A DNA stretch of 64,000 bases from the NCBI GenBank assembly GCA_024704765.1, contig JAKMXF010000221.1, positions 496,001 through 560,000 of the forward strand, given 5' to 3'. The position numbers were made by a program, and so were the translations under genes. The notes beneath the pieces were generated by a model. That model ran no database searches and was not told the DNA's origin. It saw nothing but the letters and a program-made list of their open reading frames with translations. This document shows, one piece after another, positions 11,915-62,333 of the stretch (positions are counted from its first letter, which is position 1; each line of letters starts with the position of its first letter). This DNA comes from Oopsacas minuta. Lineage: Eukaryota; Animalia; Porifera.

Positions 11915-14900
11915 TCATGAAATGTGTGAGAATTTCATATTTTTCGGTATAATATATTGATTATAACTGCCAATGAATAGTCGTCTCACTTCCAAGAGTT
12001 TGTCTCTCCGTATTTTAACCAATTCTGGACATTTATCTGACTTCTGGAGACCGCAATGTATAGAGAATTCACTATCAGTCATATGTTCTAGATAATCCAT
12101 ACCAAAATAGAAAATCTCCTCAGATTTCGAATTCCTATCGCTCAGTTTGTGTCCGAATAGCCTCCAATCGTATGCTACTGTGAAGAATAACATCTCTAGT
12201 GGGTTTAGGCTAGCATGCGCAAGACCGTCTGCCCATAGACTTAATCTTAACAAGGATATGAACATAGGTGTTCTGTCCCATCCAGAAATACAGTGTACGA
12301 ATACTCCCCCGTTAGAATTCTCCAGTTGGTATAAGAGCAGTCTTGTATAACAGCTAGTCATGTCTTTTATACTCCATTCTTTGTATTCTGCCCAATTGAC
12401 CCCCAGGGGTTTGTGTACCACCCCATCTGGGATCTTTAGGATAGCGTCCACCTTTTCTACTTTCCAATTGAATCTCAGTTTATCTGAGTTAAGATATTTG
12501 CTTTGATAACCGCGGAAGGATTCACAACCTGGATACGGCAAACTGGCTAATAGGAATTCTCGATACCTATAGTAAATATTTGAAATATTTTACAATAATT
12601 AAGTTTAACTCTTAAACAAACCTTCCAGCTTTATCGACCTTCTCTGAAGAAGCTACTGGTAACATAAACTTGAGTTTTTTCTGTTGATACATCAGGTCAC
12701 ATATCAATCGTACTCTAAGCTCTTTCAGAAGTTTTATGTCTTGTCCTCTGACCTTATCACATAGCTCTTCCTGTCTTCCTAGTCGGCTCTTGTCGGGGAG
12801 ATTAGTCGCACCGTCTTCTTCAACCCCAACACCTCCTGTCGAGAAAAAGTCCCAGCCTCTCCGTCCGAACTGTTCCACTCCCACGGATAGTGTAGCTCCC
12901 CTGCAAAGGTTCTTGTCTTTATAGATTAGGACAGGTACCGCGAATCTGCTACGTGCCCTGGCGAACCTTGCGGTCAGGAATAGCTGAGTCAATTTTATAG
13001 CATTATTAACCTTCTGCTACAAAGTATACAATATATTAGATTAGATTCGGTAACCTACACAAATGAGGTGCCAGAGACGCCGCCAAATATGATACTCCGT
13101 ATGTGGAGGCTCATTTGTATGGGACTAGGATCGCTCTGTTTATTTTTCACTCCGTTCCCACAGCCCTGTATTAATCTGTAAGTATAGATTGTGTAGCATG
13201 TCACAGCAAAGTACTAGGGTATCTCGAGCTAGTCAGGCCTCTGTACGCAGCGTGGGGTCTAGACACAGCTACAAGACTGTATCACATCATAGCGCAGTTG
13301 ATGAATCCTTATTCGGTGAGTCGTTCAGAGAAAAGAAGATGAGAGAGAACAGAGAGAGCAAATCTCTTAGTCCTGTTCAGCCTTATCACCCCGTACTACA
13401 CTCACCGGACCCTCTGGCATTCTCTGAGGCTCGACAGAAGCCAGAAGTTGTGCAGGTATTTGCCGGACATATTCCCGTGGTTTCCTGTATATTTACTTAA
13501 TTGTTTAGGTGATAACTAAAGACCTGATTCGTAAAATCCGCATACCAAGACCTGAGGATCCATCCGGACAGACTATAATCCTTGGACAAGATCACCTGAA
13601 TAGGATCGTTAGTGAATCAGCTGTTGTAACCAAAGACGATCTCCAACTGGAGAAAGAGAGACAGGAGGACAATAGGAACCAACTCCAAGATCAGGTGCAG
13701 AAGAGAAAGAAGGAATTTCAGGTATGCAGATTTATTTAAACACTCAACTCCCCGCTTATATTGAAGTGTGAATTGTACAAATATGGTCACAAACAGTTAA
13801 ACGGATTATAAAAATTGTATGATATTTGTAGGCTATTGAGCTAGCTCGTCGAACAAACGAGAAATCAGATCTCGACAAGGAATCTGAAGATACTCGTGAT
13901 ATTCTAATACAGAGATCAAAGAATATGATGGAAGAGCAGGACGATGAGATTAAAAAACTGAATGAGGTTATCCTGAATGCGAAATGTCATGCGATAAGAG
14001 ATGCTCAGTTAACTGAGAAAGACATTCTTAAACTGGATATAGACCATGAGGAGAAGCGACTAGACAATATGATGGAAATGGACAGACTCAATGCTATGCA
14101 GGAATATGAGCGTAGAGAACAAGAGAGACATAGACAGAGACTGCTGGGAGCCCAGGTAATAACCCTATACAGGGCTATGCTTTATACAAATACTCTGAGA
14201 ATATAGCTTAATATTAATACACTGGATTCCGGTTATAAGAACGTGTATTGCTACTCCCGAGGGTGTTTTTATAACTGACATCCACTGCATATAGATATTT
14301 AACCATGGGAATAGGTTATCCAGCAACAGATAAAGGACAGAGAACAAGACCGTCTGCTCGAGTCAGAGAAAAAAGACCAAGAAACAAGGACTATGCTTGA
14401 GTATCTAGAGCGTCTACAGATTGAGGACATAAAAGAGATGGAAGAGAAAGTTACCCGACAGAATATCCTAATGGAAGATATCAACCTAGCTAATGACGAG
14501 ATTCAAAGACAGAAATTACTGCAAAAAGAACAGGAAAAATTAGCCGAATTGAAGGTAGAGTATAATTACAGCTTAATGTTATTCAAGGCATTGTATATTA
14601 CAATTCAAATTGAATCACGATAATAATATATGTTAATTAGTAATCTCTTTGTACCCAACAGCCGTGTGTCATACCGATACCATATAAATCTTTGACATAT
14701 TGCCAACGACGACTATTCTCCTTCCATAAACCAAATCCGATTTTCTGGAGACGAAAATTAAACCAGGCTAATATGAAATCGGCGGGTAGTCCCTCTCCCT
14801 TTCTGGTCGGTTTCCAGTTGCTAGGGAATACCTTTATTAGGTCCCATTCCTGTCGAGTGAGCCGAGGACGTCTCATTTTCTGGACCTTTGAACTTTGAGA

Positions 14901-17900
14901 TGTCGGGGAGTAGATAACCTCTTCGTCTGATTCAGAGTCTGTTGTACACTCGAATGCATTTCTCAGAATATATTTATACATTTCTTGTTCCTGAAGTCCC
15001 ATCGATCTCCCTCGGGCATACAACCTTTTGAGGGCAGTTTTTATCTCAAAAGCGGACTCTTCTAAAAGGTGTTTCTTGCCCCCTTCCCCATTGTCTGTTA
15101 GGGTACTGTCAAATTCTTCATCCTTAGGTACATACATGAAATTATTTGATACCATATACTCAGCAGCTCTTTGCTGTATGTCCTCTGCTGGGTAACAGGA
15201 CCGTCTCGAGGTGGAGTGCACACGAGACCCTCTGCTCATATGGGACTCTGTAACCTGACCCAATTTTGGTACCTTTTGGTAAGAAGGGTCTTTCCTTCCT
15301 TTGGGGGGAGAATTCAAAACTCTGCTGAACGAGAACATATTGCACGTAGCCGTCATCATTTTGAAATGAATATACTTATGTGCGTGTTGCTATATTCTGT
15401 TTGTCATTGTATGCTACTTTATATACTAAATGTTGTTGTGATTGAGAAGCCAAGAGTACTTATAGAAGTTCTTATTAAAGTAAACGGAGAATTCAGAACT
15501 AGTGAATAGATTCCTCTGGTACTTTACTATCAAGGGTTCTTATTTACAATCTGACAAACTTGGCTAAGTATTACAGATATAACAGCAGGGCTTATGGGGT
15601 TCTTACCTAACCGATATTTATTTGACCATTTCTGACAGTAGAATTTTGTTGCTAAAAAGCTAAGTGAATTTATTATTTCATTAATACTTCCCGAGAAGAC
15701 TTCCAAAATCCTAAAGACACGAGTACAGTGGGTCTAATGGCCTTGAGCTGGGGTAACATCAATGAACGTGGGCTTTCCCTTTAGGCTTATGAATAGGAAG
15801 AATTGTATTGTTAGAATTTATGATCTCTCCCTCGTCTTACCTTTAACTCAGAGGTGTTAATATTATGTTTTTCAGTTTGCAAAATGAAGAGAAATGAACT
15901 TTGCGAGTTCCATACAGACGAACATTCTCAATACAAGTCTCTAACATAACAACAACAAATGTAGTATGGTATTCACCCCATATAATATCAATAACCGCAA
16001 TGAATAGTATTGTTCGAGTTCTTATGTCAACATTGCATTTTACAGCACTCATCCCACAACACATCTGTGTATAGAATTATAGTGTATTATGACAGCATCC
16101 CTAAGCAGCTGTGATGCTTGTCAATATCAGTGAACTTGTCAGTTAATTATTTGAGGAAATTAGTTTGAATAAGGTTGCGTAGTGCGATAGAAGCTCGTAT
16201 TTTGTGATGCCATAGAGGAAGGGTAGCTGTAATTATCATGGATACTCTGTTAAGCTAGTTATTCCTGAAGGATGAGATTATTCTTGACCCGCATTTCATA
16301 TTTGGGTTTATTCGATGTTTAACATATTCCAGGGCCAGTGCCATTTGAGCATTCTGTGTGTCCAAACACTCTGTCCCTCGTCCTAGACCTCCAAATTACC
16401 AACCAACTAATTTAGTGACATTTCATGCTTCTACAATGTCCATGTAAGGCATTAGACAGATACCAAATGAATCGGGACATAACGCTCACAATGTGTCCCC
16501 GAAGAAACTATGAGATATTTAAATATTCGAACTCGTGTATACTCTCAATATTATCTCACAAAAGAATTGTACCCATTCTACCGTCGCACTGTTTGAGGTA
16601 GTAATTGTAAGGTTTAGGATAATCTTGTTAAGAAAGAAGCTATGAATTGAATTTGACAATTCTAGCTTAAATAATCTTTCGTAATTATTGTTCCGCTTAT
16701 CGAGATATTCATTCAGTATTGATTATACGCGGGACATATGGCTTAATTAATAAGATGGGATTCATCTGTAATGTCATACTGATTCACTCGTGTTTGTTAT
16801 TCTAGTTATCACTATGACGTCATACTATTGTCCGTTTGTTTGTTAGAAAGCTAGCAGTTACTAATTAGGGAAGTTTGTTATACTGAAGTACAATAGAAAC
16901 GAATTTCTTGATATCTCCGGTGTAATTCAACTGTCCAATGTGTGTCTATTCATTGATTACTCTTTTAGGTGTTGGAATATATCAAAGAGAAGGAGGCCAG
17001 AGAAGAGGCCTATCAGAAGGAACAGGAGAAGCTAGCCTCTGAGAAAGAGAAGGAGATTGCTAGACTCAGACAGCAACAAGAGAGAGCTAAAGACGTACAG
17101 GCGGAGAAAGACGCTCTGCGGGCAAAGAGAAACCAGGAACAGTTCGAGAGGGACTGGAGGAAAAAACAGAAAGAAACAATGGAAAAGAAGTCTGCTAACG
17201 ACAAACAGCTTAAAGAAGCCAGACAGCAGCAAATTAATGATAAGGAGCATTTTTTGTCTCTACAGGCTCAGAGAGACAGAGCTGAATTCTCTCGGGTATT
17301 AGAAGTTCAGCAGCAGTTACAGCAGAAAGATCTGGAGCTAGCTAACACACATGCTTCAAAGAATAAGGCTTACGCAGAGCAGGTTTGTATGTGCAGTGGC
17401 ACCTCCACTAACAGGGCCTGTCGAAACGGAACTTCTGGAAACTGAGTGAAAAATAAATACAGTATAGCGAATTCCTAGTCACATAGAAATGAACCTCAAC
17501 ACACGGGGAAACGGGTCTGGCGGAGGTTACACTGTAATATTATTCTATTGTCACTGTTATAGGTACGTAAACAAGTTAAGAGCAAGGAGGAGGAACGTCT
17601 CCAAGGCAGGAGGGCATTCTTTGAAGAGGGTATCAAACTAGACCTAGAGGCCAAGGAGCGTAGAAGGAAGTTAGACGAGATAAAGTTGCGGAAACTACAG
17701 GAATTGAAGGACGCTGGTATTCCTACTAAATACACTGCAGAAGTTAGTCGCCGTATCCACGCACCACATCCTGTCTCATTTACTATGTCCTGAGCTCTAT
17801 ATAGCAACCCGATCACTACTTAGCTATTTACTAACAACTGATCCTGTGTACTGATTTTAATCTGTACTTATTTATCCCATATTTCTTCTAAAATTGAGCT

Positions 17901-19516: not shown

Positions 19517-22500
19517 ATGGCTACTAACACTTCGAACACTCCTGCTATTTGCGTCATAACAGCTCGCATTAAGCAGACACGAAATAGAGCTATCAAAAGT
19601 TTCCATTCTTTCGATAAAACAGATTATTCCAGTCTGGAGAGAGAACTGATTTCTTGTTTGAGAACGAATTATGACGTCACTCATTTTTCTGATACGGACA
19701 CTACAGACTGGCCGCTATCCAATTCCCCCTCATTCCCCGCACGGATGTTCGCGAGGGGACATGTTCCGATCACAAACTCAAAATCGGTTGACTTTCTATC
19801 AAACACTTTCTCGTTTGGAAAAGATCTTGATATACTTCAGCAGTTTATGAGAGACAACTCACATATAGAGAGATATATCATCAACATATTTGCAAAAGTA
19901 TGGATATTATTAAACTCCGCGTTATAACGAAGTGATTCTTTCCCCCTATTTCTTGAAAGTAATTGAATATACTCCGCGTTATATCGAAGTGAAACCCGAT
20001 GTCCCGATCACTTCGTTATAACAAGAGTTTATTTACATTCCCGTATTTTATATGTGTCATCCTTTTAGGACGCTACACAGATCAAATCGGACTATATGAC
20101 AAAGTTTTTCAACATGGTATCCTCCAGTAAGAGTGTCGTGTTCTATTTCTGTCGGAAAGCAACCCGTAAAATGTTCCAGAAGGAGTACTGGACTTCTCTA
20201 TGCGGTCTCCTTCAATTTTCAATTCGTAAATATATCTTAGATTTTAAAGAGAAACACCCAATCTTAGATACGAACAAATTGACCAATCATATTAATTCTT
20301 ATCTCAAAGGTTAGTTACATATTAATATTTGAGTTCCCTTATTAATAGGTGTTAGTTCCAATTCATGTGTATATTTATCTCCCAGCACTCGGCCTTTGAT
20401 ACCTAGTTACCTTTGGACAACAGTGTGGGGTACATACATATGTAATCTAATTATAATTGCCTCTGTAATTACTAAATCTATCTTTAGAAATAATTATCTT
20501 ATAATATATAACGATAAGATGTTTAACTAATATTAGCTGTTTTGTCAAACTATCAGTGATCGATGATGGATCAGAATGGCGATCAATTCAGTCATCAGGA
20601 CTCTATTCGTGAGAACGGGGTGGAGGATATGATGGTAGAGACGCGGCGTCGTGTGAAGCTGTTTGTTCTTAATGAAGCTCACGATTGGGAAGATAAAGGA
20701 ACTGGACATGTGACTGTGGTTTTCCAAGAATACCTACATGGTCTAGCGTTAGTTGTCCGTAGCGAGGACAACGGAGCTGTCCTCCTAGAGTCTCGGATTG
20801 AATCGGACAGGGTCTACCAAAAACAGGACGCGACATTGATAGTATGGGACGAGAATGAGATTGAGAAGGCTCTCTCCTTCCAGGAGCGACAGGGCTGTGA
20901 TGACGTTTGGTCCAAAATAAGAGAGGTTCAGGGCCGTAACGAACTCGGAGAGATCTCAGATAACCTGACTCACATGGAAGGATTTGAAGATGACCAAATA
21001 TTCCAAAATTCGCAGGAAATATACGCGATTGAAATGCCAGTTGTAAACACAGAGAATTTACCGAATATCTATGAGTTACTAACCAAATATACTAACCCAG
21101 TCGTTGATAAGGATAATGTAGTAGCTGCTATAGAGAATGAAGATTACGTCAGAAAGCTTCTGGAGTTTTTCCAGATCTGTGAGAGGGATAAAGACACGGA
21201 AAACCTCCAAACTCTATATCGGATCTTTAAGAATCTCTTCTTAATGAATCGTACTGCTATTCTACAGATCATGCTCAGTGAGACGAATATCATTGACGTC
21301 ATAGGGTGTCTAGAATACGACCCTAGGGTCACTACCCCCTCCACACATCGGGAATTCATTCGTAAGCAAGCTAGCTTTAAGGACGTTATCCCTATCACAA
21401 ACACTGAGCTATTAACAAAGATCCATTTGATGTATAAAATGCAATATATACAAGACGCGATACTGCCTGCTCCCTCTATGTTTGAGGAGAATTTGATGAA
21501 TGCATTAGCTCAGTATATTCTATTCCAGAAGATTGAGATAATAGAAATGATTGAGAAGGAGGAAACGTTCCTGATGGATCTTTTTGGAGGGATTGAAGAG
21601 GAAAATAGAGAGGGGATCACACCCGATAAATTTAAGAACCTAGTCTTCCTCTTGAAGGAGATTTGCCTGTTTTCACAGGCCGCGCAGAATCCTGCCTCTA
21701 AGCACAATTTCTCTCTGATACTCTGGAATAATGGAATGATGAAGTCTCTCGGAATTATCCTAAGCTCAGATGATGACGTCATTCTACAGAGTGGTGTAGA
21801 TATCCTATTGACCATGACTGAATTTGCTGGTACCAGTATTCAGCTTAAAATTACGACAGAAGCGGAGACTCAGGAGGAAGACGAGCAAATTATAAATCTA
21901 CTAATTAACACACTTGTCGATCCTCATAAGTCATCATTAGACGCCTCCACTTTCCATTTATTGAGGACTCTAATCGACCCGGAGACTTTTATACCTGACA
22001 TGAAGCCAGTTGACCGAACAACATTCTTATCGTACTTCTATAAGAACTGTATGCACCATCTGATCGCTCCACTCCTCGCGGTAACTACTGACACACGAAT
22101 ACACCATTTATTAGACACAGTAGATAACACGGAGATACTAGCTAACATTATTCAACTGCTGGCGTTCTGTGTAGAACAACACACATACCATAGTCGTGTA
22201 TATATAATAAATAAGAACCTCCTGTCTCGTGTAGTCGTCCTATTGACTTCTAAACACTCCCATCTAGTCCTCATGACAATACGACTTGTCAGAAAGATAC
22301 TAGGCATGAAGGAGGAAGGTTTGAACTCTTATATCATTAAGAATAACCTGCTACAACCACTGACGTCACTATTAATAGCAACACCTAAGTATAATATGAT
22401 TAATTCAGCCTGTCTTGAGTTGTTCAGTTTTATTTTGAAAGAGAAAACCAGAGGCCTTCTAAAGTACCTGATTGAAACGCTCCCAGAGGTGAAGGAGATC

Positions 22501-25500
22501 AGATATGTGGAGTTGTTTACTAAAATGCAAATAGAATATGATCATATGAAAGAAACAGAGATCAATCCTAGTAGAGAGTTAGAAGGATTGATGAGCATGC
22601 AATGGTCCGCCAAGGAGCGGGACGAGCAGAGGAGAGAGGAGAGAGACGAAGAAGCCTGGTTTGATAGAGATGATGACGTATACGCGATTAATTCAAGTTC
22701 CCCGGGGGAAGACGCTACCCCAATGAGTACAGAACCCCATCCTGCTATAACCGCTAGTCCAATCAAGGACTCCTCTCCCGACTCTCCTACCCCTCCGTCC
22801 AGCAGCGTGTCAGTCCGTACTCCTACTCGTCTCGTCGAGTACGAACCGGACAGCGATGAAGACACCGATCCAGAGGAAGTATTAGACCCGTTCCCAGTCC
22901 CTACTACCTCTCAACCAAACATTCCAACACCTGATCCCCTTCACCCCTCCTCTACCCCAGAAGATAAAATCAAACCTCTCTCAAACCCTCCAGACATCGA
23001 ATTAATCTCTCCAGCCAAGCGCCCTCGTATCACGTAGCAATCTGCAATCACTGTTTAACCAATAGGCGAACGCTACTTGTGCATATTTGGATTGCCGTTA
23101 TGTAGAATTATACACTATTCAAGCAAATGTATTGTTATTCAATAGAGGGAGGATAGGTGTTGAATATTTGTTGTTAATATGATTAGTTAAATTTGTATTT
23201 CCTCCAGCTCGATATCTACAAAGTGATGATAACTATGTGCAGTGGACATCACAGCTTCGAGTCCTGACCTTCATTAAGCCAAAGGGTGAGAAAGTACTAG
23301 GGATAAGGTTCAGACAGGTGAACATTAAAGTGAGTTATCCATGGTCCTTTATTATTATAATGGAACCTCATTAATATGAACACCAACAGGCTATCGATGC
23401 GGCTCTCTCGAAAGATTCACCTAGCACTGTCCCCATAATAACAGAGATTATTCCAGACACTCCAGCAGCTCATTGTCCCTGCTTATGGATTAATGATCAT
23501 CTCCTTTGTATTAAAGGCTATATCTATACTGATACACAGTATGAAGCTAGACAGCTAGAGGGAGTAATAGCTAAGTGTACGTATGTACAGATTGTTGTGC
23601 AGAGAGCTGTACGTATATACGGACCGGAGAAGATAGCGTTTATTGCTGGGAAGAGGCAGAAGTTTGGGATTACATTCATGGAGAAGAAAAATGTAAATTA
23701 ATTATCCAACACCGTTATACTTTATGGATGGTGAAGTTATCTGCTCAGTGTTGTTCTAGGTCATTTTGAGGTACTCCTCGCTTGTTTGGAGGGATTTCTA
23801 TATGACAAAATAAATGACATCCCCATCCATGGTTAAATATCTAATAAGCGTATAGGGAACCATTTTCGTCAACACGCGTATATTAATAAACATTTTGTAT
23901 AGTTATATCAAGGCAAACTATCCACAATGATATCTGGATTCTCCTCGAGAGCTGAGACAGAATATTTAGAGAAAGGATTAGAGCTTAAGAGTATCATCCT
24001 CTCTATAAATGATAGGACATTGTCAGATCTCCCTCTATCTGAGGCAATACCTATTCTAATGCAAGAATCATTCCTGCAGGACAATATAAAGATAAGATTC
24101 ACTACTTTACAGAAATTTTGTGACAGTATTAAGAAAGATCCAGATATTAATCTAGCCCTCGTGAACCAACCGGGACCCATACCTAAACTTGTTCTAAAGG
24201 AGTCGCCCTCTCTCCCAATCATAGGAGCAGGGAGGATAGATGATCCCCTGAGGTCTGTGTTCTCACACGATGCTCAACACTACAATTATCTAAAGGTTGT
24301 ATAACAATGAATACATCTTACCCAATTTTATTTAAATCATCCAATAGGTATACATTCTTGGTGTTAAACTCTTCGAAGATGTTTACGAGTTGGTTGGGCG
24401 TTTGTTACACGAGAGTACACGTCCCCGTGTCTCGCCCCTAGAGGACACATGCTTCGAGAGACCCAATTTCTCTCCAGACCTCTATCCAAACTGTTCCCTA
24501 GTTGATCAGCTGTTCCGGGCCGCCTCGGCAGACGAGCGAGTCATCACGGAATTGGATCTGGACTCAGAATGGCGGCCAGTATGTTACACCCCCGTACTCT
24601 CCAACCTGTCCTACCCAGCTGATCTCTCCGTCAGGTCTCCTGTACACAAAATGAGTCCATTACACCATAAGCTAGATGTTATAGGCCCTAGCACTCCTCT
24701 AGGAGATACAGGATATGGACTGAAGAGACCCTCCTCTATCTCTCTGATTACCCCTTCCTCTTCCTCCTCAAGTATCAGTTCTGAGCAGTCTCCGGACCTT
24801 ATGGTCCGGTGTGACATGTCCTCTCCTATACCAACAGCTGCTATCACCCTTGTACTCCTGAGGAACACCCGTGAGTTGTCCTCCCTATCCCCACCGGACA
24901 TATTTCCCCTATTCAAGCGGTCAGGTCTTTACGTAATGGTTATTAATCTTGAGAGAATATTCTCATTCTTTGAAAGTGAGATTCATTTCTATCTCAAAGT
25001 CTTAACTGAACTTCACTCGCTTCCTTTTCAGGAACCAGTGAAAGTATTTATAGTAGGTCTATATGACAGTCTGTTGGAAACGACTGTACGAGCGCTCTGC
25101 TGGTCGCTACACGGATTGTTTGAGTCGCTATTTAATTCACATGTGATACTGGACAGTAAGAAGTTTGAGACATGTGTGTTCCCCATCCGTCGTAGCGACA
25201 GGAATATGGACACCGTACACGTGCTTAGACAGACCCTTCTGGCCTTCTCTAGAGGGACATATCCGGACCATGGTGTCTGTGAAGAGGACTCTACCGGATT
25301 ACTAAGGATACCGGATAACTTCAATAGGTTCAGAGTATGTAGTCTCCTACAATCCACTGTACCAGTTCTGTTGTCAGAGTACATCGGCCAGATTCTTGTT
25401 GAGACAGAGTTACCAGAGCATCATCTGGAGATAGCACTGAGTGCTCTCGTAGAGTGTACACCATTCCTAGCGCCAGGTGAGTTGTCAAGCAATGATTTTG

Positions 25501-27273
25501 TCTAGTACAGTCAACTCCTGTTATAACGAAACTCAAGGGGGGCCTTGATAATTACTTAAATATAAGCGAGTTTTTCTATTTCTATAAACGTGAGTCGAGT
25601 GTACGTATCTCTTTAAATATTTTCTAGATAATTTATCCGACTTAAATGAGGAAGGGATATTACTCCGTCCGGGGATATTCCTGCGTATTCTTAAACAGCT
25701 GGAGAAATGGTCAGGAGGAGATGGACTAGACAGATACCCAGAACAGAGGGAGATATGCAAACAGCTTCGATCATCATGCTACTTCAATCCTACCGTGTTA
25801 ATACATGCTATTATGCAGAGCTGTTACAAGTAAGAAATAGACACCCAAAATTTGGTTCAAGTTCTTCCAATTATCCAATCTTTAGATTAAGTCAGATAGC
25901 AAGAGCTCTGCTACGCTGGATGGAGAAACTTGACTATATTCATATAATAGGTGGTCCGATCTCTACCGCAGAATTCGAGAAATATTCAATGAACAAGTCT
26001 ATGACGCCTAAACCTGGTCCTAAGAACATCAAAGTGTTTATGCCTAGCATTGCCTTATGGAACGGTTAGTTTTAATAGCTAATTTGTGTTCTATTTGTGA
26101 CGTCATGAAATGTTTAGATTATAAGAAGCTTGACACTTCGACGGTATTCTGTGACGCACATGTGTTCTATCTGGACGTGTCAGACCCTATTTCATCGCGG
26201 TTCTATTTCCTGTTCCTCTCCGAGCTGCTGCGAGCTGTCCATCAGTCTAACATGACATCATTATCCCCGACACGAAGAGAGATAGGCATACTCCCCCTCT
26301 ATGATTTCCAGCTGTTTAAAGGTGCTAGCATAGCTAGGCTGTTTGATCAGGAGCTGTTAGGATGTAATCTGGAGATTATTAATCATCACGATCAATTCCA
26401 GATTGAGTTCAGAGCAAAGTAGGTTATTTCTTATAAATTTCTGACCCTTGATTATTAACCATTTGAACCCTGTTTCCTTGTTTCTGGAGGTTTATTTATT
26501 TGGGAATAAGAATTCGCTCTAAGTTCTTCGTTTCCACAGGCCCCGTTTGTGGATGTCACACTGTATAGACTTTAAAAATACCTGACTTATTAAATATATC
26601 CCCAGGTTTGGGTCGACTCCCTCCCAAGCTCTCCCCAATCTACTAAGGCAGATCTACTCTTGTGGAGGTAAAGCTCTCAACAAAATGAATCTCACTGACA
26701 AAGGGTTTAACATAGCTATAGGACCAGCTTGTCCTGTGGAAGGGTGTCCTGGAAAGAAAAAGACATCTGGTCTGTCTAAAGCTACTGTTAGTTTTGTACA
26801 AGTTATACAGAGTAATCATCCTACTCGATACCAAGGTAATTCCAAGCTAATTTAGCCCAGTTTGATTGAGGAACTGGTAAGAGCTATAAACTTAAAACTT
26901 GGCACGTGTGTGGAATGTAATTAATCAAGTAACATGTCCTAATATCTAAGCGATATCTCAAAAACTCTCTGAGATAGGTGTCAAAATGTCTTAACCTATC
27001 AGATTTGAGGATTATCCAGCATGTGATTCTATTGGTTAATTATATTAATTATCTCTAGGTATAAGCCCCTGTGAAATGAGAGGGCCTCTCCCTTGTTGGG
27101 GACGTCCAGGGGTACACGTTATTGACCTTTCAGTCAACTTCCGACACCCAACCAAAATAGTGTCACATTACTCACAGTGCCAGGACCAAATTATAACACC
27201 TGACAGTCCTATTGTTTGTTGTCAGCAACATTCCTCCCTCCGTGACTGGGCTCCCCATGATCCTCCTATTTAA
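19517..27273 (+). CDS. Uncharacterised 1226-aa protein: N-terminal region, two PDZ-like domains, degenerate Roc/COR-like region; intron 2 (20310-23207) hosts PP4R3
   Basis: Exons 19517-19897, 20069-20309, 23208-23329, 23390-23692, 23903-24295, 24348-25476, 25699-26064, 26118-26418, 26606-26835, 27059-27273 give one open frame with all phases matching. PDZ-like: KPKGEKVLGIRF...IITEIIPDTPAAHCPCLWINDHLLCIKG and KRQKFGITF...MISGFSSRAETEYLEKGLELKSIILSINDR. Roc-like strands KVYILG, GLYVMVINL, VKVFIVGLYD. Domain calls are by eye. Confidence 0.68.
19911..20030. mobile_element. Tc1/mariner-like MITE remnant (family D) in intron 1 of the PDZ gene
   Basis: TAAACTCCGCGTTATAACGAAGTGA repeated twice and inverted CACTTCGTTATAACAAGAGTTTA. 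Confidence 0.6.
20563..23037 (+). CDS. PPP4R3: Protein phosphatase 4 regulatory subunit 3 (SMEK), intronless CDS, nested on the same strand
   Basis: 824-aa ORF; EVH1-like [78 protein letters not shown]; acidic Pro-rich tail ending in NLS-like PAKRPR. Confidence 0.93.
   Translation: [824 protein letters not shown]
25506..25603. mobile_element. MITE family A, internally deleted copy
   Basis: TACAGTCAACTCCTGTTATAACGAA left end; degenerate right end GAGTCGAGTGTA; in intron 25477-25698. Confidence 0.6.
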
Positions 27274-53782: not shown

Positions 53783-56700
53783 TTATTTCTTTGAATCTTT
53801 CTCAGAGGGCCAGTCTGGGAATATCGCATAGTGTGCGGGTTGTCGAGCTCCGGAGACAGAGAAGATGGTGCCTGTAGCGGACTGTGCCTTGTTGACCCTC
53901 TGGCGTTTATATTTTTCAGAGTATTTATGTCTCCTAGGAGAAGAGACCGAATCTCCTGCTTCCTGTTTCTTCTTGTCAGCGTCAGAGTGTTCAGATCCCT
54001 TTACCGCTTCCTTAGAACCTTCCTTCTTAGCTAAATATATTACACAACATTGTCAGGACAAGAAAAATTGAGCAAAGACCAAAAAATCGGGTACAATTGG
54101 AGATTAACAGCCCAATGAATGTTACCAGAATATGTTCGGATCAATAGGCACCAATTTTGGTTACAAGGAGGCCGGGGGGGTCTGGGCCCCTAAGATTTAG
54201 AGGCGGAGGCAATATCGCATGGTGATCCATCAGGTTTGTTTCCTAAAACCGATTTATAAATGAACTTACCCTTTGAAGGGTTTTTGGGTAACTTAGTCTT
54301 TGCCTCATCATCAGTTACCTTCTCTACTTCATCATCCCTGCTTCCCCTGGCCGTATCCTGCAAATACTTGTATATCTGTCCTCGTTCCTCAGCTGTCCGT
54401 GAGTCAAGAAACCGCTTGACGTCACCAGAAATCTCTCTAGAAGGCTCCCCTACACACAAGACCAATTTCTTATATTGATTTGCTGGGAAGTTTTACATGC
54501 ATATGTGTATTAATCCAAGACCACAACAAATCGGTAAAGTATGCAAACAATGCATAAACACGCCACTCCACTAGTCCATACATTCCAATGCAACAAGTAT
54601 GTAGTCGGGTTACTAGGGTATTCGTGGGTACTCTTATACACGCCCCATGTCTAGGAGAGGTGATAATTTCACAGTCTATTCTAGGAATAGACCCACAAGG
54701 AAAGATATTGTTCATAAGACCATACAATCAACTTGAAGCAGTGAAGGGAGAATTTGAATTTAAAGATACGTCAATTGTCCAACTGTCCCCCTCCCAATTT
54801 TTAATACCAGGATTCATAGACACTCACATACACGCCCCTCAATACCCAAACACCGGTCTGGGACTAGACAAGCCCCTATTGGAATGGTTATCCGCATACA
54901 CCTTCCCCCTAGAGGCCCGTTTTAGCGATCCTAATTATGCCAGAGGGGTCTATAATGACGTAATACGTGACACCCTTCGACACGGTACCACTACAGCCTG
55001 TTATTTTACTTCAGTACATGTGGAGGCCGCTAAGGTCATGTGTGACCTGATCCACAAATGGGGACAGAGGGGTCTGGTTGGTAAGACATGCATGGACTGT
55101 AATTCGCCGCCCTCCCTCTCACAAACCCTCGAAACTAACATACAAGGGAGTAAACAGCTGATAGCGCATATTTCCCAGCTGGGAAGCTCTCTCCTCTCTC
55201 CGGTCCTCACCCCTCGATTCGCTCTGACATGCTCTGAAGAGTGCATGAGGGCATTAGGGGTGCTGGCAAGAGAGGGACACTATCATATACAGACACACAT
55301 ATCTGAGAACAAGCGGGAGGTGGAGAGGGCCCATGAGTTGTACCCTACAGCAGATAGTTACACACATGTGTATCAGGAATGCGGGCTTTTAACGGATAAA
55401 ACTATTCTTGCTCATGCTATATACCTCACAGACCAGGAGTTGGGAATTTGTAAAGAGGAGAGAGTAGGGATAGCCCACTGCCCAGTGTCAAACTTTGCTC
55501 TTAAGAGTGGAGTATTCGATAGTAGACGGATCCTTGAGAGAGACATAAAGTTAGGCCTCGGGACTGATGTCTCTGGGGGGTACACAGTGAGTATGCTTGA
55601 AGTTATGCGACAGACCCTTATAGCCAGTACGTGTATCAGCTTCCAGACACAAGATCCTGCATACCGACCTCTTGACTACAGGGAGGCATTCCACCTGGCC
55701 ACACTAGGGGGTGCGAGGGTGCTTGGATTAGAGGACAAGGTTGGTAGCTTTGAAGAGGGAAAAGAGTTCGATGCTCTCCTCGTGGATGTAAATAGCCTTC
55801 GGTCACAGATCCGAGCGGATCCGGGTCTATCCGTTTCGGAAAAGTTCCAGAAATTCTTCTTCAATGGAGATGACAGGAACATTTTAGAGGTGTTTGTAAG
55901 TGGCAGAAGGGTAGAGACACAATAACACTCAACAAACTGACATATTTCTAATTAATTTTATATTTATTTACCTCTTTTGCTAAGAGACTTAGCGGATTGA
56001 GATCTGGGTCTACTGACTGCCTTCTTACTATCCTCCAGTATGTTAGTACTCCAGATCCTCTCCCGTGTACCTGACTAAGAATATTTATTAAATTAGTAAT
56101 ATTTGTAGTGTTAAGAGCCAAAATAATCTCAATCACCAAAATGGCGTGAAATATTCACTTGACAAGAATTTCATACTTGAGGTGCAACTCTGCACCCCCA
56201 AAATGTACCTATGTGCCAATTTTCATATCAATCGGTCTATTAGATTTCTCAGGACACCGCGGACGGACGTCGTCCAAGATTCGTATCACCCAATTAGATT
56301 TGAGGGTTTATAGGCTTATAACATGTAATAGAACTTACAGCTGATCTTGAGCGGGGTAGAGAGCGGGAGTATGTTCTAGAAATACTCCTCAGTAGCTCAC
56401 TCTTCTCCACACCATGAGGGGCAGCTGGATCATGAGCCAAGTTACACAGGGCGTTACCCATATACCAGTCCCTTCCATGGTACGTCCCCCACCCCTTGGT
56501 TGATATCCCTGCGCCAATACCGCCCATGCGGCCTCCTGTATAGTCTTGGTAGAATGACTCACTGATATCTCTCTGAAACCTATCTCTGTTAGATTGATTG
56601 TACCTGCAAAAAAGATAGTACATAACATACATTAAGTAGGTAAAACGCGTCGTCTAAATATTTTGCTTTATTAAAGTTTACGAGGCTGTACTGTAGAGCT

Positions 56701-59700
56701 ATTTTATAGGAGGAAAATGTCACAGGCTCAGGGAAAGATCTCCAAACTATTCGCGAAGAAACATAAAAGTGTAGGGGCTCTTGACAGTCCCATAATGTCA
56801 AGAGGGCCTCTAGGAAGACAGGAGAACAGACCAAAGGTCAAAGAGGTCCTGGTGACGTACAGCACCGAGGAGAACTTGTTCCGCATTCTAAAACCGAGAC
56901 TAGAAGCTGAGCTATGTAAACAGAGTTTCGTTGACGACCAATACAAAGACGGGAATGTATCACTTCTGCAGTGTAAAATAAAGTTTGAAAAATTCGCGCC
57001 GGAGACTTATGAGAAGTTCGACACGAGTTTTTTCAATCACAACAAGTTCCTATTCGGGACCCCACTCATTCATCTTTTCTTCACATCTTCTAACGAGATC
57101 TCCTGGTATAACCGAAGTACTAAGAATGACATCAAGACATGGCTCATGGCTCTTGAACAATTCGGTTACGACAACTGGATTCTTGTTCACGTGACACAAC
57201 ACGCTTCGACACTACGTAAGAATGCATTAAGCAATATAAACAATGTAATAAACACGATAAAGGAGGACATCGCTTCAACTAGTCCGAGTTCTGCTAAGAA
57301 GTTCTATCAATTAACTCTTCCTGAAAAAGGTGATCAAGCCACGGAGAAGCACTACGACGGGTTTATCACATTCCTTTTCACCACTATGAAGAAATATTTC
57401 ATCTCACAGACAGATAGATACGAGACACTTCTCTCCATGACCCGTGAGGACCAGGACAAACCTCTTTGGAACTTTTTCCATTACTTCCTAATGCAGGAAC
57501 AACTGTGCTTCGCCTATGAGCATATGGGTATGTACCAAGCTGCCCTCCTAGCGTATGATGAGATAGACGCGATGCTGCATTACTTAATAATCAAAATGTC
57601 GATGAACAAAATGAAGAAATCAAGATGGTTTGAAACGCTGCAACATTGTTGTCAAGAAGTGCTTCTGGATTATCCACATATTACTCTGTCACTCGACCAG
57701 AGTCACGATCCTTCTTTAGAGAATAAGACATGTAGTTTGTTCAAGCTCCGTTCTGTAATATTCGAGAGACAAGCGACACTCCTGTTTATCTTGGGGCAGG
57801 CATGGGATGTTGGACAGCGGGCCCTTAAGCTACTTAAAGATCTGAGTGAAGAGAGCTCCTCCATGCAACTTCCAATTCCGACCGGTGCCCTTGACGCCTG
57901 GAGTTACTTAATGTGTAAAAACGTGTTGGATGTTATACTAGATCAGCTCAGCAACAATCCGCTGAATCCTCTCAAACAATTCGCGATAGAATTGACCCCT
58001 GATAGACCCGGACCGGACACTCTAGGCCCCTCCCAATGGGTCGTACGGGCACAACTCTGGCACCTACAACTTAACAAACTACACTCTCTAGGACAGATAT
58101 CCGGATTCATTTCTAGCAAGGTAGGGACCGCGGCGGTTATGGATGATTACTCGACAGAGACTGAGACTTTGAAAGAACTTTGGGGCTCCATGTCCTCAAA
58201 CGATCCATCTAGCAGTGCTTTAGACCTCCTTAACGTTCTGTCATCACGTCAGACATTCAATAGAGCATATGTAGAGCTAGCGGAACAGCTGATCGGCGCG
58301 TTAAAACACGCGGGCAGGAAAAGAATGGCAATGCATGCGAGTATGAATTTCGCAAAGTTTCTTCTAGCCAAGAAAGATCTCGCTAAGGCACAGGACGTTC
58401 TAACGGAAGCATGTAAGTTGTACTACTCCGACAAATGGCCTGTACTTCGTCTGAACTCCCTCTCACTCCTGGCTGCTTCACAAGACAGCAAAGACAATCC
58501 ACCCCACGAATACCTAACAACATGTCTGTTGCTAGCTTGCACACTGCCCATTCTTAACTCACATTCTCAAGAAAGGTTCTTCCATTGCTTCAAGGATCGT
58601 ATCGATTCGATAGCAAAGGAGAGCCAGCAAGAAATAATTCCGATACAATTCTCCCTCCTTTTCACAGTTAACTGTATATCATATGCTAAATCAGAATGGG
58701 AGGCGGGTGACGTCATCACGTTAACACTCTCATTAACAAATAAAGCTCCAGCTGATATACTCATCGATAGTATAAAGCTAGCTTATCAAGGGAAAGAGAC
58801 TCTTTTGTCTCCCATAGCTAACATCCCCGGGTATTGGACACGTTTGTATAGCTATACCTCCCTCGATGAGATCCCAAAAGACACGAGACTAGGGGAGAGG
58901 TCTAGGTCAAGGAGGAAGATAAGTAAGACATACTCTCAAGATAGTTCGAATTTTGATTTTTATTTCACAGCGAAAAAGGTGACCCTTGTTCCTGGGGAAA
59001 ATAATCTGGTACTCTCAACTAAATGTAGGATAGCAGGGACTTATCATCCAGACGATCTGATCATAGAATTCTCTTCTGTCCAATTCAGACACTCCACAGA
59101 CCCCAGACCAAGCGGCAGCTTTCCTACCGAAGAGATTGAAGTGGTCCCTTCGGAGGCGAAGTTAGCACTATCAGTGGATTGTCCTGGAGGATTCCTGCTA
59201 GCGGGAAAGCCGTCAGAAGTAACGCTAAACATATTCAACGAGGGTAAGACGATAATATTATGTGGATCTACCATCACACTATCCAGCAGTCAATTGCTTA
59301 TACTAGATGTTCTAAGTGGTGAGTACAATCGTGAAGGAGAATGCTATCAAATAACTCTACCAGATATAAAAGTTAAAGCTGTATACCAAGTAAGACTGCA
59401 GGTATGTAGAGATTTGACACCTAATTATGTCCCCACTCTAGCTAGACATTGAAAAGTTCACCTGTATAAATAGATGGACATTTAACCGAAGCCAGACACA
59501 ACAAATAAGTAAACAATAATATAAACAATTAGGTGAGATGTGATCCAGAAGCTCTGAAACCTGAAAACATATTAGCAGAGTCTAAAATGCATTCTTCTAT
59601 CTCAGAGGGGGATAACACGATGATAAGACGTGTTCCAATAGACGTAGAACTCCCTAAAGACAGCCTATACACTCTAAACTCATCTCCAGGAGACGACACA

Positions 59701-62333
59701 TCTTGTGGTTGTGTCCTACAATTAACTGCCACTTGTAATTGGGTGAATAAGAAAGCTCATCACAACTACGGAGCTGTAATCCCTCTTGCTTTCTATTTAC
59801 CATTCAAATGTAAATACGATCTATTCAGTTCAGGCGATGTTTCATTTGTTAAACTAACCTTACAGTCAACTACACCCCTTCCTATTCTTCTACGTGATAT
59901 GAAAGTTAAACAGACCTCTGTACTGAAGTCACTGATGACATGCGACCAATTAGAGTCCCTACTGCACCCAGGGGACGTGATGACACTCCTGTATCAGGTA
60001 TAATTTTGACCAACGATTTCTAACGAATTTGTTGCTAAGATACGTCAATGGAATGTGTTATATAGGTAGATAAGGAATTCAACCCGGTGTTGAGTCAGAT
60101 ATGTCAGCTGTTGATTCAATACTCACTCGTTGGACAGGAGGAGACCATATTAGAGCATTCATTCCGTTTCAAGCTACATGATATACAGAGCATGTTCATA
60201 TTGACTTCACAAATTGAAGTAAGTGAGTCTCCTCTAATTGTCCACTTGGACACCTTTCACCCCGTTAGGTGGACAAATAGAAAGCCAAATGGGGTCGTAG
60301 GGGACATAAACAAGCCCATGGTATTCTCCATGGGCTCCGATAAAGTCAGTGATAAAATCGACACAATTATCCACGGTATATAGGCACACAAATAGTGTAA
60401 TCTGATTGGCTTACAGCAGCTGTAATTCTGTAGCTATCTGATGCTGTATTGAAGAAGGACCAGGAATGCAAACTCTCAATTAACATTAAAAATATACGAG
60501 ACCTCCCCAGACAGTGGCAAGCCCCCATGGACGATATCGTGGTGGTGGAGTACGAATTGAGGTGTGAAAATGGTAACTGGGAGCTGGGGGAGGAGATACA
60601 TGGGTCTCTTAGACTACAACCGATGAAGAACGCATCAGAGGATCTAAAATTTCGGATCCGTCCCCTCACCCATGGGCAACTCCCCCTCCCTAATTTGTTC
60701 CTAACCCTCAAATCATACACCTGGAATAATACTAGCAGTTACATAACAGCTCAGTTCTCTGACACATCCTCTCCGGCTGATGTACCATACACGATGATAC
60801 CACTAACAAGTGTACAGGTGTATAATTCTACTGCATCCATGGTTGTACCTATACATTCTGACAACTAGCAACTTGGATTTTATGGATAATATTATTTTGA
60901 TTTTAACGGTATTTTTACTATTAGAGAAAATTGAATATACGGGGAACTTCTGGAAACGGAGTGAAAATGAATAGAGAAAATTGCTACAAATGAACTTCGG
61001 ACAAGGTAGCGTTTTCCGGTGTCCCAGACCCTGTTTGTGGAGATTACACTGCACTAACCCCATACTACAAGCCGTATAACATGAATACAGTCAACTCCCG
61101 TGATATCGAACACATGGATGTATCGAGTATCCGCTTATATTGAGGTGTGAAATTGTACAAATATGGTCCCAAACCGTCAAAGTAACAAATATTCCATTGG
61201 TCATATCTGTGTAATTATCACGGTCCCTTGAGCTTTGATGTAACAGGAGTAAACTGTAATTATTATAAATTACACAGATGGGCATTTGTATTAGAATTCG
61301 AATCATATTCCAAAAGTGGTGAGGTTCGTGGTTTGTGGTTATAGATATGATAATGGTTGATGATTTAACATTTTCAGAGATCTCCGTTCTCGATAACACT
61401 AATGTATAATGTATTACAACATTCCATTCAACCATAACTATATCTTTGAATGAATTGCACTTCTACAAGTGCCCAGTATATTAATTTGGAATTTATGGCA
61501 CAAAAGCTTTACTGAAAAAATTGGCTGAAAAATCAAATTTTGTAATCTTTTCTAACCAAAATTTGATATTGTCCGTCTCCATTTCTCAGTAACAACTTGA
61601 TTTGGAAGCAGAACTGTCTAATTACAGCAATTTTACACTGAAAATTAATATACAAAAGGTGTTAAAAGTAATTAAATACGTAGCTCTAGCTTGTTAATAA
61701 AATGACGAGACAGAAATTGTTCAGATTAGAAATCGGAACCTGTTTGATATTATTAACCCAAAAAAGTGGAAAATATATCATAATTAAGTGTCAAATTGGT
61801 TTTGAAAGCATTTCTTCATAGCAACGGTATAGTATTCTTCATAGCAACGGTATAGTATTCTTGGTATGTGTAATAGTTTATTAATAAAATAATTTTCAGT
61901 AGAAATAACAAACAGGAAATATTAAAATATTTCCTTTAAGATTTCCTCGTTTGAAGAGATTATTTCTAAGATCAGTGTTGGAGGGGACTACTGTTTCTAA
62001 CTAGGGGGTACACGGGTAGTATTGTGGCCCATCGCGTTCACAGGCACGGACCATTGGTCCAAAAATATTAGGAACATTTTAACAACTTCACCCCGTAGCT
62101 TAATGGTCGGAAAATGATAGAAATTGATTGGCTAAAATTGACCAATAGAATATCACCCGACACATAATTAGTAAACCCTCAAATCTGATTGGTCTAGAAC
62201 ATTTAATTGTAACTAACTGATCGGGGGCTTTGTAGTGAAGGAAATCTTTTGAAGGATGTGGACTGTTCCTCTTCTCCTGCACAGATCGTGACGCCACGGC
62301 AGGACTAGCTGATCCCTCTACTGATATCGGCAT
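53783..62333 (-). CDS. Uncharacterised 314-aa basic low-complexity protein; hosts GDA (intron 54483-55971) and probably TRAPPC10 (intron 56604-62217)
   Basis: Exons 62333-62218, 56603-56339, 56074-55972, 54482-54270, 54030-53783 give one frame (phases 2,0,1,1): MPISVEG...HYKAPDQ|YNQSNRDRFQ...RSA|SGTRE...SKR|ANQYKKLV...SK|AKKE...HYAIFPDWPSEKDSKK. The last four exons are well supported; the first join is less certain. Confidence 0.65.
54588..55925 (+). CDS. GDA: Guanine deaminase, intronless, nested antisense
   Basis: PGFIDTHIHAPQY, TPRFA, QTHISEN, LAHAIYL, HCPVSN, GLGTDVSGG, FEEGKEFDALLV, GDDRNILEVFV. Confidence 0.95.
   Translation: MQQVCSRVTRVFVGTLIHAPCLGEVIISQSILGIDPQGKILFIRPYNQLEAVKGEFEFKDTSIVQLSPSQFLIPGFIDTHIHAPQYPNTGLGLDKPLLEWLSAYTFPLEARFSDPNYARGVYNDVIRDTLRHGTTTACYFTSVHVEAAKVMCDLIHKWGQRGLVGKTCMDCNSPPSLSQTLETNIQGSKQLIAHISQLGSSLLSPVLTPRFALTCSEECMRALGVLAREGHYHIQTHISENKREVERAHELYPTADSYTHVYQECGLLTDKTILAHAIYLTDQELGICKEERVGIAHCPVSNFALKSGVFDSRRILERDIKLGLGTDVSGGYTVSMLEVMRQTLIASTCISFQTQDPAYRPLDYREAFHLATLGGARVLGLEDKVGSFEEGKEFDALLVDVNSLRSQIRADPGLSVSEKFQKFFFNGDDRNILEVFVSGRRVETQ
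56717..60868 (+). CDS. TRAPPC10: Trafficking protein particle complex subunit 10 (TRS130/TMEM1)
   Basis: Exons 56717-59401, 59533-59997, 60066-60218, 60434-60868 in phase (1245 aa). PLIHLFFT, WNFFHYFLMQEQLCFAYEHMG..AALLAYDEIDA, AGRKRMA, YYSDKW, IRPLTHGQLPLP. The exon-3 donor has alternatives (60345). Confidence 0.88.
61086..61258. mobile_element. MITE family A, full length
   Basis: TACAGTCAACTCCCGTGATATCGAA ... TTTGATGTAACAGGAGTAAACTGTA. Confidence 0.8.
61812..61862. repeat. 23-bp tandem duplication
   Basis: TTCTTCATAGCAACGGTATAGTA twice plus a partial third. Confidence 0.9.

Follow-up and report, generated by a model that had tools for sequence, protein, structure and literature searches.

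Seven guest genes and their hosts

The window analysed here, i.e. the whole stretch of 64,000 nucleotides, comes from the glass sponge Oopsacas minuta (Hexactinellida; assembly GCA_024704765.1, contig JAKMXF010000221.1, bases 496001-560000). Within 50 kb of it, nesting involves 12 of ~23 genes. Seven guest genes are accommodated by five spliced host genes, namely MTMR14, a 1232-aa gene, an ankyrin-BTB gene, a ~1380-aa gene and a ~300-aa gene, and by CFAP45, which is both guest and host and gives rise to a three-level nest (MTMR14, CFAP45 and an unnamed 240-aa gene). All seven guest coding regions lie wholly within a single host intron, of which they make up 30-90%, with start or stop codons 46-1609 nt from the intron edges. 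Six of the seven are antisense to their immediate host; PP4R3 alone is on the same strand. The features, in order of position, are as follows.

11915-18659, minus strand: host 1, the MTMR14 orthologue, 538 aa; exons 18659-18093, 13016-12622 and 12566-11915
13017-18092, minus strand: MTMR14 intron 1, 5076 nt, holding CFAP45
13198-17793, plus strand: CFAP45, six exons; antisense guest of MTMR14 and host of the unnamed gene
14555-16968, plus strand: CFAP45 intron 4, 2414 nt, holding the unnamed 240-aa gene
14637-15359, minus strand: unnamed single-exon gene, 240 aa; third nesting level, in the CFAP45 intron
15360-16968, no strand: remainder of the CFAP45 intron, 1.6 kb, unconserved and ORF-poor, upstream of the 240-aa guest
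19517-27273, plus strand: host 2, unnamed 1232-aa gene, 11 exons; exon groups conserved in L005 and L006
20310-23207, plus strand: host 2 intron 2, 2898 nt, holding PP4R3
20563-23037, plus strand: PP4R3, 824 aa, single exon; same-strand guest of host 2; Pfam EVH1_PP4R3 and PP4R3
29630-33804, plus strand: host 3, ankyrin-BTB gene, 771 aa, 8 exons; an intron splits the BTB domain
32279-33256, plus strand: host 3 intron 6, 978 nt, holding the CIMAP1/ODF3-like gene
32452-33204, minus strand: CIMAP1/ODF3-like gene, 250 aa, SHIPPO repeats; antisense guest of host 3
34705-40506, minus strand: host 4, unnamed ~1380-aa gene; exons 40506-40411, ~40353-40148, ~40067-39941 and 38424-34705
38425-39940, minus strand: host 4 intron 3, 1516 nt, holding TRNT1
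38503-39888, plus strand: TRNT1 (CCA-adding enzyme), 461 aa from the first ATG; antisense guest; Pfam PolyA_pol and PolyA_pol_RNAbd
53783-62333, minus strand: host 5/6, unnamed small gene, ~300 aa; exons 62333-62218, 56603-56339, 56074-55972, 54449 (or 54482)-54270 and ~54030-53783
54450 (or 54483)-55971, minus strand: host 5/6 intron 3, 1522 or 1489 nt, holding GDA
54588-55925, plus strand: guanine deaminase (GDA), 445 aa, single exon; antisense guest; Pfam Amidohydro_1
56604-62217, minus strand: host 5/6 intron 1, 5614 nt, holding TRAPPC10
56717-60868, plus strand: TRAPPC10, ~1232-1245 aa, 4 exons; antisense guest; Pfam TRAPPC10_1st
60869-62217, no strand: remainder of host 5/6 intron 1, 1.35 kb, unconserved and ORF-poor, downstream of TRAPPC10

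Intron counts rest on our own gene models, which contain 38 introns in the window as against ~49 in the models of a preliminary description. That description had all introns short except seven and a complete ORF or gene in each of these, and both statements hold for our models: the seven long introns (978, 1489 or 1522, 1516, 2414, 2898, 5076 and 5614 nt) are real and each contains one complete gene, while the remaining 31 measure 52-283 nt (median 110), leaving a gap between 283 and 978 nt into which none of the 38 falls.

For comparison we used three other sponge assemblies (ERZ25072740, ERZ20067936 and ERZ25072730), presumed from similarity and gene order to be hexactinellids as well, whose orthologous loci are labelled L003-L008. 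The guests are complete, independent genes: PP4R3, GDA, TRNT1, CFAP45, TRAPPC10 and the SHIPPO-repeat protein all yield full-length matches, and the unnamed ORF shows conservation over its whole length, Met and stop included, in three species. PP4R3 is full length against animal orthologues of 800-830 aa, and its C-terminus SPAKRPRIT is conserved in three species together with the stop codon that follows. The CIMAP1/ODF3-like protein matches Pfam SHIPPO-rpt with five repeats (E = 5e-21) and is 75% identical to its same-place counterpart in L003 and 68% in L004; the corresponding values for TRNT1, which has two conserved start codons, are 57% and 49%. GDA is 44-48% identical to named orthologues and 64-74% to sponge orthologues, TRAPPC10 is 70% identical in L007 and 78% in L008, and CFAP45 gives a Pfam TPH match. 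The 240-aa ORF is 73% and 62% identical to same-place ORFs in L005 and L006, its C-terminal half being highly conserved, and has no match in Pfam or PDB (the latter searched with the single sequence and with a three-species profile); its AlphaFold2 model, with a pLDDT of 43.5, is too poor for searching. Since it lies on the same strand as MTMR14 it was also considered as an exon of that gene, and rejected, as a Met and a stop of its own are conserved and there is no place for it in the MTMR14 homologues. Pfam also returned nothing for hosts 2, 4 and 5/6.

Continuity of the hosts across their guests

An important question is whether the exon groups flanking each guest belong together. Judged by sequence, they would form one host transcript in each case, with homologues from outside the group aligning straight across three junctions (MTMR14, CFAP45 and the BTB domain) and the other four showing the same exons, GT/AG sites and open reading frame in the other sponge assemblies. 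For MTMR14, alignments of 17 full-length homologues (17 clusters; e.g. Ptychodera flava XP_070557546.1) run in order through each of the three exons, the third of which carries the CX5R motif VHCISGWDRT and a Pfam Myotub-related match; GT/AG sites and junction peptide are conserved in L005, and a PDB search with exon 1 found nothing. In CFAP45, residues 255-335 of the PDB chain 8snb_3W correspond to exon 14315-14584 and residues 336-455 to exon 16969-17409, i.e. to the two sides of the intron with the 240-aa gene. In host 3, the exon upstream of intron 6 ends ...SLSDVILVSSEGKK and the exons downstream match positions 22-62 and 64-108 of the Pfam BTB domain, which continues across the intron; both L003 and L004 retain GTGAGT..YAG as well as the junction peptide.

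For hosts 2, 4 and 5/6, which are without homologues outside these sponges, continuity is suggested only by conserved splice sites and reading frames. Host 2 has the junction peptide ...NSYLK|ARYLQSDD in all three species (window, L005 and L006), with donor AAAG|GTTAGT and acceptor YAG|CTCG; its 3' exon group has no ATG ahead of the point where conservation starts, and a PDB search with its largest exon found nothing. As PP4R3 is the same-strand guest, transcription of host 2, if spliced in this way, must pass through the 3' end of PP4R3. The 5' exons of host 4 are 62-88% identical in L003 and L004, where they sit between CaMKII and TRNT1, and in each of the three species its large exon is conserved from the acceptor onwards, before any ATG occurs; the exons join in the conserved peptide ...RIKLESNL-EDK|RINKK. 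All exons and GT/AG sites of host 5/6 are conserved in L007 and L008, and its junction peptides EKRNSPHPS..FLH.KAP|... and SRPRSQSAK..SK.|...KRFLDSRT.EERG are open in the same frame in three species; a PDB search with an exon profile found no match.

Taken over the orthologous donor and acceptor positions in the three other assemblies, 22 of 22 carry GT or AG, and the exon side of these splice sites is more alike (nucleotide identity 0.65) than the intron side (0.39). When each donor is joined to its acceptor, the frame stays open and the junction peptide is conserved in every species compared, and the exon groups 3' of guests are without a start codon ahead of conserved sequence. Host exon groups and guests keep the same order and orientation across L003-L008, and all seven nests are present in each compared assembly that covers the locus; the comparison with related species proposed in the preliminary description thus finds the nests to be common to these sponges.

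Junctions were picked by a frame-aware search with a simple splice-site score, independently of the earlier choice. The score sometimes favoured adjoining in-frame sites (62143, 54449 and 40314), and the choice was then settled by cross-species conservation. All six junctions quoted previously have canonical GT..AG, the search picked the same sites again for five of the six, and it also recovered the 2414-nt CFAP45 intron (14555-16968). Two junctions call for comment. The junction 62218>56603 was picked in one of two runs, the other favouring donor 62143; conservation between species backs 62218. For 55972>54482 the GT..AG proposed is present, but the conserved acceptor is 54449, 33 nt further inside and in frame, and the GDA intron is for this reason 1522 rather than 1489 nt long.

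Treatment of the locus in the public annotation

In the public annotation of the window stretch there are zero nested genes. The expectation that automated annotation would break up such hosts proved correct: in these 50 kb the record has five genes in pieces or shortened, attaches PP4R3 to an unrelated gene and omits the unnamed guest. It divides MTMR14 into a 191-aa fragment and a 360-aa gene, the ankyrin-BTB gene into pieces of 591 and 134 aa, and the host of GDA and TRAPPC10 into pieces of 144 and 134 aa, without its first exon; it cuts the TRNT1 host short at 1142 aa and joins PP4R3 to the 3' half of host 2 in a 1852-aa protein. At least two genes are absent altogether (the 240-aa guest and an alpha-kinase). 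Exact look-ups of the PP4R3, CaMKII and 240-aa guest ORFs in the public record found no annotated gene, so the record must model these three differently or not at all.

Could the annotation be right, with the flanking exon groups being separate small genes and PP4R3 the 5' part of a 1852-aa fusion? Apart from the GCA_024704765.1 models themselves, this would be in line with a GT that shortly precedes the PP4R3 stop, at 23026, and is in phase for acceptor 23208. However, it would cut MTMR14, CFAP45 and the BTB domain each in two, and it would have 3' groups that start at conserved acceptors without an ATG and 5' groups that end at conserved donors. The fusion itself was rejected, as the stop after SPAKRPRIT is conserved whereas the candidate donor GT, present in the window and in L005, is missing in L006; elsewhere in animals, moreover, PP4R3 has 800-830 aa. 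An alternative first exon of host 2 between PP4R3 and 23208 was likewise discarded, the sole conserved block there being without a conserved ATG or donor. We therefore regard the annotated structure as extremely improbable.

The practical value of these data lies in re-annotation of the O. minuta reference. The genome paper draws conclusions on gene number and loss, "lacking key metazoan core genes" (PMC10280926), and annotation errors of the kind seen here, if common genome-wide, would bias gene counts and could hide genes. Only 83 nested genes were counted in the O. minuta annotation by Francis et al. (2023, PMC10282587), who ascribe low counts in some genomes to annotation method and show one nested gene to be mis-annotated as a first exon.

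Nesting, intron length and margins

Overall, we consider it very probable that these loci represent gene nesting of the ordinary kind, with protein-coding genes inside introns, at an unusual density and in a small genome prone to deletion, five hosts being spliced across seven guests. The nests would then have existed before O. minuta and at least three further sponges, presumably hexactinellids, diverged, and would have persisted because moving or deleting one partner would damage the other. Introns would otherwise have 50-300 nt, and the long ones would, as we infer, be those that hold a functional gene which cannot be deleted.

As an architecture this is not new, since abundant conserved nested genes in glass sponges have already been reported: Aphrocallistes vastus has 2432 of them (12.4%), 'many of which are conserved' (Francis et al. 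2023, PMC10282587). A. vastus belongs to the same animal class and has the same compact genome with mostly single-exon genes; that paper provides counts and one locus, and is without these seven pairs, a three-level nest or a comparison of intron length with guest content (PMC10282587). The nested genes of Drosophila and mammals are alike in that a complete gene with its own start and stop lies in an intron, most often on the opposite strand. Mammalian examples are OMG, EVI2A and EVI2B in NF1, and F8A in F8. In the genomes of Drosophila and mammals, however, host introns usually comprise many kb and are mostly empty, whereas the O. minuta guests fill 30-90% of theirs, with margins of tens to hundreds of bases. 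A Drosophila example is 2mit in an intron of timeless2, and a share of ~6% is given for intronic genes in D. melanogaster (PMC3786989). The reasoning favoured here has a parallel in Giardia, where an intron under loss pressure would survive owing to an overlapping functional antisense gene (Xue et al. 2018, PMC6545626). There, the few introns are short and merely overlap antisense genes, and their presence is at issue; in O. minuta whole genes lie inside, and it is intron length that is at issue.

The distances between host splice site and guest start/stop codon are 105/46 nt for GDA, 78/52 for TRNT1, 52/173 for the CIMAP1-like gene, 82 for the unnamed guest and 113 for TRAPPC10, equal or close to the 46-110 nt stated before for several cases. 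With margins of 46-52 nt, some overlap of guest transcripts with host exons is likely, and it is plausible from sequence that host exons serve as guest promoter or UTR. Nesting might even be an adaptive packing, selected to save space, with host exons as guest promoters and UTRs and with antisense overlap coupling the regulation of host and guest. The tight margins (GDA stop 46 nt, TRNT1 stop 52 nt and CIMAP1-like ATG 52 nt from a host exon), similar ones in the other species (47-122 nt), the first AATAAA/ATTAAA hexamer of GDA and TRNT1 lying beyond the intron edge and the presence in nests of 12 of ~23 genes in 50 kb would all fit. Yet non-nested neighbours are about as tight (140-165 nt at TPR/host 4, BTB/TPR and Ndc1/Rab), each guest saves no more than the length of one intergenic spacer, 1.3-1.6 kb go unused in each of two guest-bearing introns, and orthologous lengths and margins vary: the CIMAP1 intron has 953-1826 nt, and the PP4R3 ATG lies 253-1216 nt from the donor of host 2. 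Such adaptive packing thus appears quite unlikely, and a purposeful packing system is not needed, as deletion bias and selection against losing an essential guest give the same pattern.

The extra DNA also weakens the earlier claim that long introns persist only because of their guests, which we could at most infer: two of the seven carry 1.3-1.6 kb of additional unconserved sequence, and the CIMAP1 intron, depending on the species, has 953-1826 nt. Of these remainders, 15360-16968 is matched by neither L005 nor L006 in blastn and tblastn, and 60869-62217 by neither L007 nor L008, where there is a gap of similar length at this place; as the window, scanned in full, gave no Rfam or tRNA hit, neither is a known RNA gene.

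It is a serious possibility, to which we give somewhat less than even weight, that the nesting is real and the window nevertheless an unrepresentative hot spot, with gene-free long introns common elsewhere. Seven nested of ~23 genes is well above the 12.4% in A. vastus (PMC10282587), and the window was picked for its striking look. The mean O. minuta intron of 341 bp (PMC10280926) exceeds the 110-nt median of the short introns here, so either there are longer introns elsewhere or this mean is inflated by mis-modelled genes. Within the window, however, nothing contradicts the rule that a long intron holds a gene, and a chance cluster would leave the nested state itself undoubted. At the other extreme, hexactinellid intron length might be strictly two-peaked, with essentially all introns above ~300-400 nt being long only through a sheltered gene, guests alone shielding intronic DNA from a strong deletion bias and interlocks of up to three levels being a main cause of the unusually stable gene order in glass sponges; we find this generalization rather doubtful. 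The evolutionary interest of ordinary but dense nesting is modest: these are clean conserved loci for testing whether guests protect introns from deletion in shrinking genomes, and they are also suited to testing whether nesting locks gene order.

Long introns and the genes inside them

The architecture of this stretch is ordinary gene nesting at high density: about 23 genes lie in 50 kb, and 12 of these are hosts, guests or both. Six of the seven guests, i.e. complete genes inside an intron of a host gene, are antisense to their immediate host, and one nest has three levels, with an unnamed gene inside CFAP45, itself inside MTMR14. In our own models of eight multi-exon genes with 38 introns, 31 introns measure 52–283 nt (median 110), none lies between 283 and 978 nt, and the remaining seven are the guest-bearing ones. 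The preliminary description had taken these long introns to be real and gene-bearing, and splice sites, a junction search, conservation and the completeness of the guests all bear this out. All six junctions it quoted have GT..AG with good consensus. When conserved coding segments were joined via any in-frame GT..AG pair and scored, the same sites came out top for 18093>13016, 20309>23208, 32278>33257 and 39941>38424, and the 2414-nt CFAP45 intron (14555–16968) was likewise found. For 62218>56603, donor 62143 scored higher in one of two search runs, but cross-species conservation backs 62218. One site is probably better replaced: the GDA intron has two possible in-frame acceptors, 54449 and 54482, and since conservation favours the former over the originally proposed 54482, this intron measures 1522 rather than 1489 nt. 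Acceptor AGs are paired in frame at two host exons, where, to judge from sequence, either AG could be used, giving small alternative protein insertions:

40067/40076 (-): acceptor pair, 9 nt apart
54449/54482 (-): acceptor pair, 33 nt apart

PP4R3 (824 aa) matches animal orthologues of 800–830 aa end to end, GDA (guanine deaminase) is a 445-aa ORF, TRNT1 has both domains of CCA-adding enzymes, the CIMAP1/ODF3-like guest has five SHIPPO repeats, CFAP45 matches CFAP45 chains in solved axoneme structures and TRAPPC10 carries the N-terminal family domain. The seventh guest, previously termed an orphan ORF, is indeed a complete ORF in a long intron, yet it is no orphan: with 73% and 62% identity to same-position ORFs in two other species, it is conserved in place and thus a real gene. 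Neither Pfam nor PDB returned a match for it, and AlphaFold2 modelled it with low confidence. Two guests show further features:

14637–15359 (-): unnamed guest, C-terminal half very strongly conserved (QEWDLIKVFPSNWKPTRKGEGLPADFILAWFNFRLQKIG...RRWQYVKDLYGIG)
38503 and 38581 (+): in-frame TRNT1 start codons; the annotation uses 38581, whereas translation from 38503 would begin with an arginine-rich stretch (MLSVICRRRLLRL...) resembling a mitochondrial presequence

The two-start layout, also present in L003 and L004 (orthologous loci from other sponge assemblies), would be consistent with dual targeting of the CCA-adding enzyme.

Continuity of the host genes

Homologues outside the group cover three junctions, i.e. 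those in MTMR14, CFAP45 and the BTB domain. The host surrounding CFAP45 is MTMR14: its second exon as query retrieved more than 300 relatives, the named proteins looked up among them were MTMR14 of Ptychodera and Lingula, and all 17 full-length MTMR14-type proteins tested align to the host exons in order.

Host segments aligned with residues of the 17 MTMR14 homologues
18608–18384 (-): residues 1–80
13016–12585 (-): residues 87–230
12568–12059 (-): residues 220–400

Residues 255–335 and 336–455 of PDB chain 8snb_3W (CFAP45) exactly flank the 2414-nt intron. In the ankyrin-BTB host of the CIMAP1/ODF3-like guest, the 978-nt intron interrupts the BTB domain; the upstream exon ends in ...SLSDVILVSSEGKK, and the two exons after the intron correspond to Pfam BTB positions 22–62 and 64–108.

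The remaining four junctions, in the unnamed hosts of PP4R3 (1232 aa), of TRNT1 (~1380 aa) and of GDA plus TRAPPC10 (~300 aa), were judged by comparative evidence from six loci in the unannotated ENA assemblies ERZ25072740, ERZ20067936 and ERZ25072730, reached through homologues of the 1142-aa ORF, PP4R3 and GDA. At protein identities of 37–88% to the window, the host exon groups and the guests are all present in unchanged order and orientation. GT or AG is found at 22 of 22 orthologous splice positions flanking six long host introns, where the fraction of identical nucleotides is 0.65 in the exonic versus 0.39 in the intronic flank, and joining donor to acceptor keeps the frame open and the junction peptide conserved in each species.

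Conserved peptides across host junctions
Host of PP4R3: NSYLK|ARYLQSDD
Host of TRNT1: RIKLESNL-EDK|RINKK
Host of GDA and TRAPPC10: EKRNSPHPS..FLH.KAP|... and SRPRSQSAK..SK.|...KRFLDSRT.EERG

Exon groups 3' of guests start at an acceptor, with no ATG before the conserved sequence (in three of three species for the TRNT1 host, whose true first exon, MADKQFKSS...ECSEDF, is conserved and located past TRNT1). ERZ20067936 carries a tandem pair of ORFs (493 and 489 aa), flanked by repeated 87-aa ORFs, next to the NHL gene (L004 21529–25253 (-); L006 18568–21590 (+)). At this place the window shows just one small conserved ORF (29126–29371), which suggests that the species in question underwent a local duplication or insertion.

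The same-strand guest and the public annotation

PP4R3 and its host share a strand, and in the public record they are fused into an 1852-aa protein. Such a fusion is unlikely: conservation extends to the end of PP4R3, with its C-terminus SPAKRPRIT and the stop codon, a single GT ahead of this stop is phase-compatible but absent in one species, and between stop and host acceptor there is no conserved ATG or donor in the species compared. At 20309, the three species have the same host donor, AAAG|GTTAGT. Past the PP4R3 stop, in a region otherwise unalignable among three species, lies a conserved block, possibly an element of the 3' UTR or of 3' end processing that must function inside the host intron:

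~23085–23130 (+): block of ~45 nt (TGTGCATATTTGGATTGCCGTTATGTAGAATTAT), 50–90 nt past the stop; counterparts at L005 ~12560–12600 and L006 ~11680–11720

That automated annotation would break up the hosts had been predicted correctly. In the 61-Mb O. minuta assembly (GCA_024704765.1), where the majority of transcripts are single-exon, hosts are split, truncated or fused, and no gene in this stretch is annotated as nested. By an exact match of the 445-aa GDA ORF, the window corresponds to bases 496001–560000 of contig JAKMXF010000221.1 in this assembly.

Public annotation of nested loci
MTMR14: 191-aa fragment plus 360-aa protein
Ankyrin-BTB gene: 591 aa plus 134 aa
Host of GDA and TRAPPC10: 144 aa plus 134 aa, first exon absent
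Host of TRNT1: cut to 1142 aa
Unnamed guest: absent

A further gene has no counterpart there:

46575–47305 (+): alpha-kinase gene; ORF 46964–47305 matches Pfam Alpha_kinase positions 99–185 (E = 5e-28), upstream ORFs in other frames hold the remainder

Its orthologue (L008 335–1093) lies in a different place and on the opposite strand relative to GDA.

Age and probable origin of the arrangement

Nesting as such is already published: the glass sponge A. vastus has 2432 nested genes (12.4% of genes), many of them conserved; nested genes defeat automatic annotation; the O. minuta annotation holds only 83; and, in one O. minuta example, a nested gene is given as the first exon of another gene (Francis et al. 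2023, PMC10282587). Nesting goes unmentioned in the O. minuta genome paper. Our finding is therefore a correct rediscovery, at the level of a locus, of a published feature; new are the seven individual host–guest pairs, the nest of three levels, the local gap in intron length and the list of annotation errors.

Common to four assemblies, the whole arrangement is old. The intron-length pattern is, we infer, most economically explained by a passive origin. Deletion would have cut introns in this genome to 50–300 nt, whereas an intron with a needed gene could not shrink below that gene's size, nor would it be removable by cDNA-mediated intron loss. The same retention logic has been proposed for the few introns retained in Giardia (PMC6545626).

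The stronger proposal that long introns persist only through their guests is, in that form, not supported. Two guest-bearing introns contain unconserved segments of 1.6 kb (15360–16968) and 1.35 kb (60869–62217), in which neither an ORF nor an Rfam family nor a tRNA was detected, the CIMAP1 intron, 978 nt in the window, measures 1826 and 953 nt at the two orthologous loci, and the distance from host donor to PP4R3 start varies from 253 to 1216 nt across species; length is thus not at a minimum. At the places matching the two unconserved segments, other species have gaps of similar length. The tight margins noted before are real (46–113 nt in several cases), so that guest UTRs or promoters likely overlap host exons. 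Unnested neighbours in the window are about equally tightly packed. At its left end, beyond which the gene extends, lies a transporter with at least six ORF-sized exons and short introns:

1–6090 (+): full-length ABC transporter, two transmembrane and two ATP-binding domains
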